From contig OZ176051.1 of NCBI GenBank assembly GCA_964247055.1, positions 11,036,001 through 11,100,000 of the forward strand: a stretch of 64,000 bases of DNA, in the 5' to 3' direction. The position numbers and the translations under genes were made by a program. Positions 46,119-50,703 of the stretch are shown here, piece by piece. Origin of the DNA: Paragordius varius. Its lineage: Eukaryota; Animalia; Nematomorpha. How positions within the stretch are numbered: position 1 is the stretch's first letter; the number at the start of each line of letters is the position of its first letter. Under the pieces are notes generated by a model, which ran no database searches, was not told the origin of the DNA, and saw only the letters and a program-made list of their open reading frames with translations.

Positions 46119-46348
46119 TGTTAAGTTAGATCCTACTGTCGTAGACACAAACGCACCTATATAATTGTAAACAATTATAACTCTTTGTGATATACCTAGT
46201 TAATGTTTATTGTAGCTTCAAGCAAAATAGCTAGTATATAATTGCTGTATTATAATATCATACCATGTTTTTGATTTCTGTTATTTAATAGATTCCTGTT
46301 TACATCGTTACTTCTACTATTCTAGGTTATATAGCTTTAGTTCCATTA
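46119..46348 (+). repeat. 5' LTR
   Basis: TGTTAAGTTAGATCC...TTCCATTA; roughly 92% identical to 50474-50703 by eye. Confidence 0.93.
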
Positions 46349-46359
46349 TTGGCGCGGTA

Positions 46360-47285
46360 ATGAACCTAGTAAAAATTTCTCTGGAAAGTTTTGATGAAAA
46401 GGAAAATTTTGACCGATACGTTTCGTACATTCAGCGAATGTTAGCTGCAAAAAACATGACGGCAAACGATAAATTGCAAGACGTTATTCCTCGCCTACGC
46501 AGGAATGTCGGTCACAAAAAATTCGAACAATTCCTGTTCCCAAATTCACTGGATAATACCACCTGGCCGGAAATCATTGAAGCCGGCAGGAAAATCTACG
46601 AATCGAATAGGACAAACATATTCCAGGCCAGATTAAATTTCGTAAAACTCCGTCGGAAAGAAAATGAAACATTTACGGGATTTCTGTTACGAGTCAAAAC
46701 CGAAGCCGCAAAATGCAACTTCAAGCTCGACATCGATGAAAAAATGCGCGAAGTGTTCATTGCAGGCCTGGGAGTGGAAAAATTAGAACTCGATCTATTC
46801 ACTAGATTCCCCGATGCAATGTGGGGAAACGAAGCTGTAACACTCAAACAAGTGGTAGACATTGCTCTCAACTATGAAAAAGCACATCAACTAACAACAA
46901 TAGATGGCCAGATATTGCAGACTACAGTTCGGAAATACCAAAACATGTGGCGATTCTGCGGGTTAGGTCATGTACCCGGCAGATGCCCAGCTTGGGGCAA
47001 ACAATGTTATAAGTGCCAAGGCTGGAATTACTTCCAACCGTGCTGTAGGAAGAAAAGGATTAGCAACGTTCAGCATGTCGAATCTGGAACCACCCCCAAG
47101 ATAGCAATAATAATAAATGGCAAACCAATACACATGATTATAGACACAGGTTCAAGCGTATCCATAATCGATTGTCAAGCGTGGGAAAAGATTGGAAAGC
47201 CCGAGTTGCAACAAACAGGCCCAGATTCGTATAGCTATGGTGGTCAAAGAATCAATTCCAAGGGTAGTTGCATGGTCACGGTACA
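46360..47285 (+). CDS. Gag-protease of the LTR element (open frame; reads on to a stop at 47400 through the rearranged junction)
   Basis: ATG just after the PBS; zinc knuckles CG..H..G.CPA.GK.CYKC...NYF..CCR; aspartic protease MIIDTGSSVSII; no stop or frameshift. Confidence 0.85.
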
Positions 47286-47388
47286 ATGCGATGGTGGAGT
47301 TTCTTCGGGTGAAATTGTCTTACCCATTATCTTTTCGCCTCCTTCCCTTGATCTTAGTTGGTCTGCGTGTTTTCGGATGATTTTGTTA

Positions 47389-49108
47389 GAAAACGGGTAG
47401 ATTTCTCAGCCCGTACCGTTATAATGCCAGATCATAATCTCAGTATCGATCAAGTTGGCGTTCCACGTATAATAGCCCAAAACTTGACTGTGCCCGAAAT
47501 TGTGACACCCTTTAACATTGATTTAATGAACGAATTGGTGCGGAAAGGGAATAATCAATACCCAGGTGCCAAATATATATACGTGATAACGGGGATCGAA
47601 TCGACTTTAAATATCACCCAAAACCGAGTGATTTACATTTACAGATTGGTTATACGGTTAAACGACATATCCGTGATGATGATTTGATTGTCTTTAATCG
47701 ACAACCTACGCTTCACAAAATGTCCATGATGGGACACAGAATCAAAATACTCCCCTGGTCTACGTTTCGCTTAAACCTGAGCGTAACTACATCCTACAAT
47801 GCCGACTTTGATGGGGATGAAATGAATTTACACGTTCCCCAATCCCTGGAAACTAAGGCTGAAATCTCTGAACTTATGATGGTTCCTCGCCAACTTATTA
47901 CGCCCCAAACTAATAGACCAGTGGTATTTGTACAAGATACTCTAACAGCCGTACGCAAAATGACAAGGCGAGATGTGCTGGATAAAGAACAAATGATGAA
48001 TTTACTCATGTGGTTACCGAATTGGAATGGGAAAATGCCCCAACGCAATCCTTAACCCACGCTTTGGAGTGGAAAACAACTTTTTAGCCTTGTTATTCCT
48101 GGAAATGTTAATTGCATCCGAACTCATAGTACACATCCTGATGAAGAGGATAGTGATCCGTATAAATGGATATCCCCGGGCGATACTAAGGGTTTAATCG
48201 AAAATGGCCAACTTATAGCAGGTATTTTGTGCAAAAAAAACCCTAGGAACTTCTAGCGGTTCCTTGGTTCATATAGTTGCTCTTGGACTTGGTCATAAGA
48301 TTGCTGGTGAATTTTATGGAAACATTCAAACTGTCGTTAATAATTGGTTACTTATTGAATGTCACACCATAGGCATTGGGGATAGTATTGACCCTCAAAC
48401 ATACGTTGAAATTCAAAACACGATTAAAAAGGCTAAACAGGGCGTAACTGAGGTGATTGAAAAGGCACATAATGATGAGCTTGAACCCACGCCCGGCAAT
48501 ACCCTGAGGTAAACTTTTGAAAATCAGGAGAATCGAATCTTGAACGATGCCCGTGATAATACTGGGAGCAGTGCTCAGAGATCTCTTTAAGAGTTCCACA
48601 ATTTCAAGGCTATGGTTGTCGCCGGTTCCAAAGGATCTAAAATTAATATATCCCAGGTCATTGCCTGCGTCGGACAACAAAATGTTGAAGGAAAACGTAT
48701 ACCTTTCGGGTTTCGACACAGAACACTCCCTCACTTCATTAAGGATGATTATGGACCTGAGAGTCGGGGTTTCGTAGAGAATTCGTATTTAGCGGGTTTG
48801 ACGCCCTCGGAATTCTTTTTCAATGCTATGGGCGGCCGGGAAGGCTTGATCGATACGGCAGTTAAAACGGCTGAGACTGGTTACATTCAACGTCGTTTGA
48901 TTAAAGCTATGGAGAGTGTTATGGTAAAATACGATGGACCGTCCGTAACAGTGCGGATCAACTGATTCTTTTGTATGGCGAGGATGGACTTGATGCCGTT
49001 AACCTGGAATTCCAAAATTTACCAAGGCTTAAACCATCCGATAAAGCACTTGAAAGACGCTTTAAATTTGATCTTAACTTGAACGAAAGAACACTCAAGC
49101 GATACCTT
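47389..49108 (+). pseudogene. RPB1: Intronless internal fragment of RNA polymerase II largest subunit, disabled
   Basis: Collinear [103 protein letters not shown]. At least five frameshifts or stops (~47580, ~48045, ~48240, 48510, ~48588, ~48945). Confidence 0.96.
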
Positions 49109-49110
49109 AA

Positions 49111-50430
49111 TTGTCCCACATGCCGACAGAACCACAACAACAAGATACAGAAAGCTTTCAAACAGCAGAACATGTAAGATTACTCAATAGTAATCTATTT
49201 AATATAAATCGTGACCATATTAGAAACCAGACCGAAACCGACCCTGTATTAAAACAGGTAATAAGGGCACTAAGAACAAACAACTGGTCCAATAAAATAT
49301 TACATCCATTCAACAGTTTTAGAAATGAAATTGTAAATACATACTGGTTATTATATTGACATGATAGATTAATAATTCCCGAATCTCAAAAAATAAATAT
49401 CTTACAATTATTACGCGTCGGACACCCCGGATTCAAAACAATGTACGAAACAAATAGTGTTTTGGCACAATATGGAAAGCGACATAAAAAAAGTGGGTAG
49501 ATACGTGTAAAAAGTGTCAAGAAAACCGTCCGAGGCGAAAACTGAATCCCACATACAATTGGAACACGAATACAGCAATATAGGAGAGATTACATCTAGA
49601 TATAGCAGGCCCGATAGACAATTATTAATGGATAGTTCTTATTGACAGTTATTCTCGTTGGGTAGTTAAACTATCGAAAATGATATCGACCAAAAATATC
49701 TTAAATTTCCTAGACGAATGTTTCAGTCGATATTGATCTCCTAGTGATAGTAACCGACAAGGCGTCTTACTTTACATCAAAAAAGTCATGGAAACGGGAA
49801 ACATTAAACATATAACATCAGTTCCCTATCATCCAAAAACTAACGGAATGGTGGAACGGGTAATATATACCCTAAAAACACATTATCGGTCAGCAGAAGA
49901 CGATGACCCACATTCCAAAATAAATAACACGCTTTGGGGATACCGCACCAACATACACAGTGCTACAAATACATGTCCCGCTCAACTTTTCCTAAAACGT
50001 ACCCTACCCAATCCAATCACATGGCTACAATATAAACAAACAGACTTCTTAGACGATGTACCACCTAATCACGAATACCATGAAAACGAAAATATACATA
50101 AAAAATGAACTATCGAATGGATGGCGAGAAGGAATTGTAAATAAACGACTCGGATTACTCTCATATGAAATACAGAATGATAACAAAATCATCCGAAAAC
50201 ACGCAGACCAACAAAGAACAAGGGAAGGAGGCGAAAGGATAATGGGTAAGACAATTTCACCCGAAGAAACTCCACCATCGCATGACCTATGTGTTAGGTA
50301 CCCTCCGGCCACGACCGAAGACCCGACCTTACCTCCGCCTCAACCCTCGGAACCAATCATTGAGCTACCATCCCAAAATACACCCACCACAGCACCTACC
50401 ACTGACACTCATACAGAACGGCGATACTAA
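49111..50430 (+). pseudogene. Remainder of pol: end of RNaseH and integrase, disabled
   Basis: LSHMP (end of RNaseH), DPVLKQVI, VGHPG, LHLDIAGP, SVPYHPKTNGMVER; several stops and frameshifts. Confidence 0.88.
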
Positions 50431-50473
50431 TCCGACACCCACCAGATAAATATCAAGGACAGGGAAAGAGTGA

Positions 50474-50703
50474 TGTTAAGTTAGATCCTACTGTCGTAGA
50501 CACAAACTCACCTATATAATTGTAAACAATTATAACTCTTTGTGATATACCTAGTTAATGGTCATTGCAGCTTCAAGCAAAATAGCTAGTATATAATTGC
50601 TGTATTATAATATCCACACATGTTTTTGATTTCTGTTATTTAACAAATTCCTGTTTAATACATCATTACTTCTACTATTCTGGGTTATATATTACTTCCA
50701 TTA
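50474..50703 (+). repeat. 3' LTR
   Basis: Direct repeat of 46119-46348, preceded by the PPT. Confidence 0.93.

Follow-up and report, generated by a model that had tools for sequence, protein, structure and literature searches.

A stretch of 64,000 nucleotides from the genome of the nematomorph Paragordius varius (assembly GCA_964247055.1, contig OZ176051.1, positions 11,036,001 to 11,100,000 of the forward strand; hereafter, the window, in whose numbering plain coordinates are given) contains, at 46119-50703, a long terminal repeat (LTR) retrotransposon in which the end of the protease, the reverse transcriptase (RT) and RNase H are replaced by a decayed fragment of RPB1, the gene for the catalytic core of RNA polymerase II. 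An earlier note on this DNA, made from the sequence alone, had proposed that an RPB1 mRNA was captured through template switching by the RT of an LTR element. The analysis presented here follows up that proposal and adds an observation of a different kind, namely, that the captured message differs from the resident RPB1 gene at many more silent sites than the age of the insertion predicts. This silent-site excess is the new result, LTR-mediated capture itself being already known.

Architecture of the element

The 5' LTR, 230 bp in length (TGTTAAG...CCATTA; 46119-46348), and the 3' LTR (50474-50703) form a direct repeat on the plus strand, with the same termini as the LTRs of sibling elements. 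A sequence resembling a primer-binding site, TGGCGCGGTA (46350-46359, plus strand), lies one base 3' of the 5' LTR, and a polypurine tract, AAGGACAGGGAAAGAGTGA, a run of 19 purines (50455-50473, plus strand), abuts the 3' LTR; both were read from the sequence, and the complement of paired LTRs, primer site and polypurine tract given in the earlier note is borne out. Gag and the N-terminal half of an aspartic protease follow at 46360-47296 (plus strand) in an open frame that stops at 47398-47400, matches the Pfam family Asp_protease_2 at residues 251-309 and is 86-95% identical to the siblings up to 47296, where the sibling match ends. An inverted copy of another part of the element begins at 47286, in agreement with the break near 47285 reported previously. 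The remainder of pol, on the same strand (49110-50454), consists of the linker that follows RNase H and the zinc-binding and core regions of integrase, in several broken frames with 87-92% identity to the siblings and an rve_3 match (Pfam) in the integrase remnant. Pol does restart about where it had been said to, at 49110, but this position is about 15 codons past the RNase H domain and not, as had been thought, inside the last residues of that domain.

A genome search recovered at least 30 decayed relatives of this element in the assembly. In those that could be read at full length, the approximately 1.5 kb between the two homology breakpoints of the chimera encodes the end of the protease, RT and RNase H, and the domain order is PR-RT-RNaseH-INT, with an Integrase_H2C2 finger followed by the rve core, that is, the Ty3/gypsy order. 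The chimera is a defective member of the Ty3/gypsy type (Metaviridae), in which the LTRs, the primer site and the polypurine tract are present and RT and RNase H are absent, and its description as non-autonomous stands, given the replacement of the protease end, RT and RNase H. Every sibling examined is itself broken.

Two observations on the family deserve mention in their own right. One sibling (L060, G000:C3:11995757-11998372) carries a plain internal deletion that fuses the protease to the middle of integrase, with the loss of the RT-RNase H region, and is flanked by the 5-bp duplication GGCCT. At another locus (G000:C5:11206543-11381028), the family is represented by at least five copies, nearly identical and spaced by about 48 kb, four of which cluster tightly in the trees; this arrangement looks like a large tandem duplication that carries the element along rather than a series of separate insertions.

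The RPB1 cargo and the resident RPB1 gene

The cargo, 1,723 nt at 47389-49111 (plus strand), extends from KRVDFS to RYL, as the earlier note had it at about 1720 nt, and comprises RPB1 domains 2-6, including NADFDGD and the bridge helix, according to both Pfam and an exon-by-exon match to the gene in the same genome. A DNA search of the whole 110-Mb assembly matched the cargo to ten consecutive exons of the RPB1 gene at G000:C4:528070-535911 (hereafter, the C4 gene), with 85-95% identity per exon, and to no second locus. Nine introns of the C4 gene, 358-1256 nt long and all of the GT-AG type, are missing from the cargo to the base, so that the origin from an mRNA, previously argued from the lack of introns in the fragment, is borne out now that the parental introns have been checked. 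In the cargo, the nine exon borders fall at 47524/5, 47781/2, 47986/7, 48190/1, 48360/1, 48527/8, 48656/7, 48923/4 and 49089/90. The cargo lies in the sense orientation and is truncated at both ends: it starts in the middle of the KRVDFS-coding exon and ends 20 nt into exon 10, which abuts the element sequence directly, with neither poly(A) nor a flanking duplication at the cargo. The C4 gene is the single RPB1 gene of the assembly, to which protein searches add only an RPC1-like gene and a third paralogue.

The cargo is not a functional RPB1 gene or retrogene. It encodes domains 2-6 alone, and its alignment to the parent contains 10 gaps, among them three isolated single-base indels that shift the frame, as well as further in-frame deletions; there are three stops in the parental frame. 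Furthermore, the frame of the cargo is out of register with that of gag-protease. On these grounds, the disabled state of the cargo, already noted, is fully corroborated. A public-protein search with the open reading frame (ORF) of the cargo, a region too conserved for the purpose, found no near relative, and neither this ORF nor the product of the parent was among the matches.

The largest subunit of RNA polymerase III, RPC1, is encoded on the minus strand of another contig (G000:C3, approximately 5271000-5274873) by one intron-less frame of 1415 codons, compared with the nine introns per 1.74 kb of coding sequence in RPB1. The top public match of RPC1 comes from another nematomorph, Gordionus sp. 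(67%).

Joints and the inverted self-copy

The cargo is not joined to gag-protease directly. Between the two lies a 103-nt segment (47286-47388, minus strand) that repeats, in inverted orientation, the part of the element that corresponds to the C-terminal region of integrase; it mismatches its source arm (50181-50283, plus strand) at 3/103 positions, that is, is 97% complementary to it, and has this arm as its top match in the entire genome. The earlier note, although right about the replacement, did not describe this segment and, thus, missed a third switch.

Three joints can accordingly be delimited. The first, J1, is a stretch of 11 nt, ATGCGATGGTG (47286-47296, plus strand), common to the protease sequence and the inverted integrase copy, as seen when eight siblings and the element's own arm are aligned; in a simulation of 200,000 random joints between the two, at least 11 shared nucleotides occurred at a frequency of 5e-6. 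The second, J2 (47388/47389), connects the inverted copy to the cargo, and the third, J3, is the dinucleotide AT (49110-49111, plus strand), which the alignments place in both RPB1 exon 10 and the element. No other locus in the assembly spans J1 or J2; the matches of the siblings end at 47296 or begin at 47286. The search for a parent and for additional chimeric copies, suggested previously, yielded the former, the C4 gene, and none of the latter, the cargo, J1 and J2 all being unique.

Age and decay

The two LTRs differ by 10 substitutions and 4 indels over 226 aligned bases in a gapped alignment (Kimura two-parameter distance, 0.046), and half of this distance is 0.023. In phylogenetic trees, the chimera belongs to the youngest, star-like subfamily, with terminal branches of 0.021 for gag-protease and 0.032 for integrase. 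The cargo, in turn, differs from its parent at 28/1147 first and second codon positions (0.025). The agreement of these three clocks implies that the cargo and the insertion are coeval and that both have been decaying neutrally. The same conclusion is reached when the per-base rates derived from those codon positions, 0.033 per G/C and 0.017 per A/T, are applied to the LTRs: the predicted LTR distance is 0.043, compared with 0.046 observed. The chimera is a dead, single-copy LTR-mediated retrocopy.

Independent support for the presence of the cargo in the organism comes from short-read contigs of two samples of P. varius and of one run filed under another organism label, which match the exon-exon joints of the cargo without differences (examples of coverage are 47824-48016, 48330-48627, 48602-48887 and 48890-49060). 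The border between the 5' flank and the LTR is crossed by contigs in all three runs, and the border between the 3' LTR and the flank in one, the run with the other label.

A second intron-less form of the cargo was found in two runs (X1 and X3), with a 1-nt skip at 47779, a 2-nt skip at 48529-48530 and an extra, frame-restoring T after 48940; either the dead cargo is polymorphic for these indels or there is one more copy of it. A contig from run X5 that mixes letters of the parent and the cargo was considered as a possible recombinant and is read instead as a switch in the k-mer graph, there being an identical stretch of 64 nt at the point of the switch.

Probable formation of the chimera

A single round of faulty reverse transcription of a Ty3/gypsy-type element, followed by integration, appears to have produced the locus, which would make it a case of LTR-mediated retroposition by template switching; we assign this interpretation a probability of about 0.85. 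Capture of an RPB1 mRNA in this manner is supported by the spliced state of the cargo, the lack of poly(A), the 11-nt match at J1, the replacement of part of the ORF and the retention of both LTRs.

Under the simplest order of events, minus-strand synthesis would have begun normally, with the 3' LTR, the polypurine tract and the integrase region being copied down to 49110. At J3, where 2 nt are shared, RT would then have moved from the element RNA to a co-packaged spliced RPB1 mRNA and copied 1.72 kb, starting in exon 10 and stopping halfway through the KRVDFS exon. A jump free of homology, at J2, would have carried RT to minus-strand element DNA, from which 103 nt of the integrase region were presumably copied, giving rise to the inverted segment. 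On the nascent minus strand, the inverted piece is plus-strand in sense, which would call for minus-strand DNA as its template; the simplest candidate is the nascent strand itself, doubled back once the RNA had been degraded by RNase H. Re-entry into the element RNA within the protease, via the 11-nt match at J1, would have allowed gag, the primer site and the 5' LTR to be completed, conceivably all within a single cycle. Insertion into AT-rich intergenic DNA may then have been carried out by the integrase of a helper element, after which the chimera, mobile only with help for want of the protease end, RT and RNase H, would have decayed neutrally.

Several observations weigh against this interpretation. 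The microhomology at J1 joins two parts of the element, whereas the joints that involve the mRNA, J2 and J3, share 0 and 2 nt, within chance: J2 is blunt, with no microhomology, and the 2 nt of J3 are expected in 16% of random joints. The pentamer of the 5' flank, CAGTT (46114-46118), a candidate target-site duplication, has as its partner GAGTG (50704-50708), which agrees at only 3 of 5 bases, whereas siblings (L060, L055 and L063) have clean 5-bp target duplications, with GGCCT, ATAGT and CCAAT seen among them. No read or contig was shown to cross J1-J3, the short-read contigs ending at the repeated 103-nt piece. Finally, and most importantly, the silent-site distance between the cargo and the C4 gene, to which we now turn, misfits the simple capture of the resident gene's message at the time of insertion.

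The silent-site excess

The captured message is that of an RPB1 close to the resident C4 gene and not identical to it at silent sites. By codon position, the cargo and the C4 gene differ at 102/573 third, 17/574 first and 11/573 second positions, and a Nei-Gojobori count gives a synonymous distance (dS) of 0.36, a nonsynonymous distance (dN) of 0.016 and a ratio of 0.046. If the C4 gene had supplied the message when the element inserted, even fully neutral evolution of both lineages would predict no more than about 26 third-position changes, so that some 76 changes are in excess of the neutral expectation (P = 4e-29). The third-position changes go in both compositional directions and are evenly spread along the cargo. 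Thus, the idea that the mRNA of the host gene was captured is upheld to the extent that the nearest gene is the host's, but a dS of 0.36 far exceeds what an insertion of this age allows. Unless silent sites in live exons evolve unusually fast, the C4 gene of today was not the source of the message when it was captured.

Selection acting on the captured fragment within the chimera is ruled out as the source of this pattern by the frame out of register with gag, the frameshifts, the stops and the neutral decay at first and second codon positions. Neither RNA editing nor RT error can account for the silent excess, given that neither would spare the first and second positions. With these processes set aside, most of the distance must have arisen while both sequences were working genes, again, unless silent sites in live genes run unusually fast.

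Two further LTR chimeras in the same genome, both on the same contig as the RPB1 chimera, are relevant in this respect. One is a young gypsy element with an Argonaute cargo that covers the L1-PAZ-L2 region (L064:4600-5449, equivalent to G000:C2:12606099-12606948, minus strand) and with LTRs that differ at 1/307 positions. Its cargo differs from the intron-bearing parent (L066, C1:12330200-12333000) at 19/225 third positions, one first and no second positions (1/450 for first and second combined), and the last exon of the cargo is identical to that of the parent (128/128). The other is a third LTR element, in which a 423-codon open frame encodes a laminin-EGF cargo (L065:3427-4695, equivalent to G000:C2:6208426-6209694) that, exon by exon, is 88-97% identical to its intron-bearing parent (C4:1461794-1465981) in DNA and 84-92% in protein, with the frame kept. 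The backbones of the three chimeras belong to three unrelated families. The Argonaute and laminin-EGF chimeras resemble the RPB1 chimera in being of the gypsy type, in carrying an internal, intron-free fragment of a host gene and in showing selection-filtered differences from the resident gene, but differ from it in the element family, in their younger LTR pairs and in their cargo frames, which are still open. Both point the same way as the silent-site mismatch of the RPB1 chimera.

The cargos of RPB1 and of at least two other LTR chimeras might, therefore, record a gene set that lies outside the assembly, be it that of a hybrid partner, a purged divergent haplotype, germline-restricted copies or a sister lineage, or else the silent sites of live exons change far faster than dead DNA. 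We give this joint proposition even odds, and the specific scenarios under it differ in their standing.

Possible sources of the captured message

Of the possible sources, the one with the most weight, although itself less likely than not, is another RPB1 copy in the same organism that is not represented in the collapsed assembly. Candidates are the alternative haplotype or the homeolog in a hybrid or in a line with a long asexual history, as well as a paralog that is germline-restricted or has since been lost; in each case, the silent distance would predate the capture. This would explain how a dS of 0.36 with a dN/dS of 0.046 can coexist with first and second positions that have accumulated no more than the neutral decay since insertion. 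The same pattern in the Argonaute cargo, which sits in an unrelated chimera with near-identical LTRs, the 88-97% identity and preserved frame of the laminin-EGF cargo, and the very fact that the chimeras come from three families all favor one genome-wide cause of this kind. The identical last exon of the Argonaute cargo gives it a mosaic appearance, as would be left by recombination, and the contig totals of the runs from this organism, 152-278 Mb, exceed the 110 Mb of the assembly. Conversely, there is one RPB1 locus alone in the assembly, the unique flanks of the chimera are nearly invariant among three samples, and no intron-bearing, cargo-like contig appears among the matches listed. A search of the assembly for a second haplotype, with 12 kb of the neighboring DNA as the query, matched only a dispersed 1.13-kb repeat and, hence, was uninformative.

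The live gene itself could have been the one that moved. If the silent sites of expressed exons evolve far faster than dead DNA, the cargo would be a nearly frozen snapshot of the ancestor of the C4 gene, and the larger third-position distance in the older RPB1 chimera, 0.20 compared with 0.09 in the young Argonaute chimera, is what one would expect. We nevertheless consider this scenario unlikely: it requires a silent-site rate at least 8 times the neutral one for RPB1, and still more for Argonaute, it comes without a demonstrated mechanism, and the occurrence of third-position changes in both compositional directions looks more like two sequences at equilibrium.

It appears less plausible still that the chimera was built in a sister lineage, from the RPB1 gene of that lineage, and arrived by introgression or horizontal transfer. 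The silent-only divergence is, admittedly, of the size seen between species, and a foreign origin was among the alternatives named in the earlier note. However, the backbone nests within the youngest resident subfamily, with a terminal branch equal to its age, three chimeras from three families would each require a transfer, and public runs other than those with the chimera itself contain at most 7% of its words.

Two origins that do not involve template switching by the element also have to be weighed. A processed RPB1 pseudogene made by a long interspersed nuclear element (LINE), or cDNA used as filler in break repair, could have inserted into an element that was already in place, with the loss of 1.5 kb of the latter, and the blunt J2 and the 2 nt at J3 are such as end joining would produce, as is the imperfect target duplication of the element compatible with this scenario. 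Nonetheless, this course of events is quite improbable: both poly(A) and a duplication flanking the cargo are absent, the cargo is truncated at the 3' end as well as the 5' end, the replacement is bordered by 11 nt of microhomology with a segment of the same element in inverted orientation, and the cargo has decayed to the extent set by the LTR pair, which makes the cargo and the insertion coeval. An assembly artefact that joined a gypsy copy with cDNA-like reads of RPB1 is hardly credible, even though J1-J3 are bridged by no contig among the matches listed, given that difference-free, intron-less contigs of the cargo occur at approximately single-copy depth in DNA-type runs of two samples and in a run from another study, that 44 contigs for 110 Mb suggest long reads, which would span the 4.6-kb element, and that the cargo has decayed and differs from the mRNA made by the resident gene.

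Surroundings and expression

The chimera is embedded in DNA of 22-28% G+C without recognizable exons. A weak zinc-finger-like frame is located on the minus strand near 43 kb of the window, and the start of a threonyl-tRNA synthetase gene lies 6.4 kb downstream of the chimera (57141-57374), marked by a weak, sub-threshold match to the TGS domain. Further along (59600-60730), there is a dispersed repeat of about 1.13 kb, which occurs on every large contig and numbers at least 39 copies that are 93-98% identical.

One run that we guess to be RNA contained no match to the chimera, which is not proof of silence. Nor did the analysis yield any sign that the chimera is put to use. The suggestion that the chimera could be a source of small RNAs against an essential gene is, so far, unsupported, the chimera being single-copy and nothing having been found in this one possible RNA run.

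Implications and comparison with known systems

LTR-mediated retroposition of an RPB1 message, as reconstructed here, amounts to a clean and fully dissected case of gene capture in an animal outside the model species, with three joints resolved and three independent clocks. The main interest, however, lies in a silent-site distance out of keeping with the age of the insertion, a discrepancy shared with two chimeras of other families. If a second gene set exists or existed, the cargos of retrotransposons reveal and date that set; if the silent sites of live exons evolve fast instead, this genome is an unusual place in which to study expression-linked mutation or conversion. Should either hold, the cargo of retrotransposons would amount to a series of dated fossils of host coding sequences.

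In LTR-mediated retroposition, a packaged spliced message is copied after a template switch, and a second switch back replaces an internal part of the ORF, with both LTRs kept (PMC5131818); such retrocopies are known from Drosophila, mosquito, zebrafish, chicken and mammals (Tan et al. 2016, Genome Res 26:1663, PMC5131818). Several of the features by which they were recognized are found in the RPB1 chimera: the parental introns are absent, and discontinuous parts of one element flank the cargo, the ORF having been replaced and not interrupted. In both cases, an internal intron-less retrocopy takes the place of part of the ORF of a single LTR element that keeps its two LTRs. Microsimilarity at the fusion points has a median of 6 bp in Tan et al. 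2016 and amounts to 11 and 2 bp in the chimera, where only the 11 bp, which join two parts of the element itself, exceed chance. In both cases, hallmarks of L1 activity and poly(A) are lacking, and more than two switches are possible. Three differences stand out. One of the three switches of the chimera copies the element's own minus strand, which results in an inverted self-segment; the chimera is old, dead and without secondary copies, further retroposition being optional in the published cases; and its silent-site distance to the parent is far above the insertion age, a situation unreported in that study.

As far as the account in PMC5131818 goes, maize Bs1 and rice retrocopies inside LTR elements are likewise non-autonomous and contain internal fragments of spliced cellular genes. 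Bs1, as it is portrayed there, has captured three genes, exists in 1-5 copies with the same switch points and is expressed, whereas the RPB1 chimera contains a fragment of one gene, is single-copy and left no transcript in the one possible RNA run. The cDNA-mRNA chimeras of yeast Ty1 (Derr 1991, Schacherer 2004, cited in PMC5131818), to the extent that they are described in the citing paper, also place a partial mRNA between element sequences, often with microsimilarity at the joints. From what is related of them, the Ty1 chimeras were obtained experimentally, whereas the RPB1 chimera is a genomic fossil in an animal, with a helper of the gypsy type.

A parallel can also be drawn with the acutely transforming retroviruses, which captured oncogenes (v-onc) and in which the replication genes are replaced by a spliced host message, so that the virus is replication-defective and depends on a helper. 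The RPB1 chimera differs from v-onc capture in that it implies neither a read-through transcript nor selection on the cargo, which is out of frame, truncated and decaying, but shares with it, as this capture is represented in the literature cited in PMC5131818 (Goodrich & Duesberg 1990, Swain & Coffin 1992), the essential feature, namely, the replacement of replication genes by a spliced host message.

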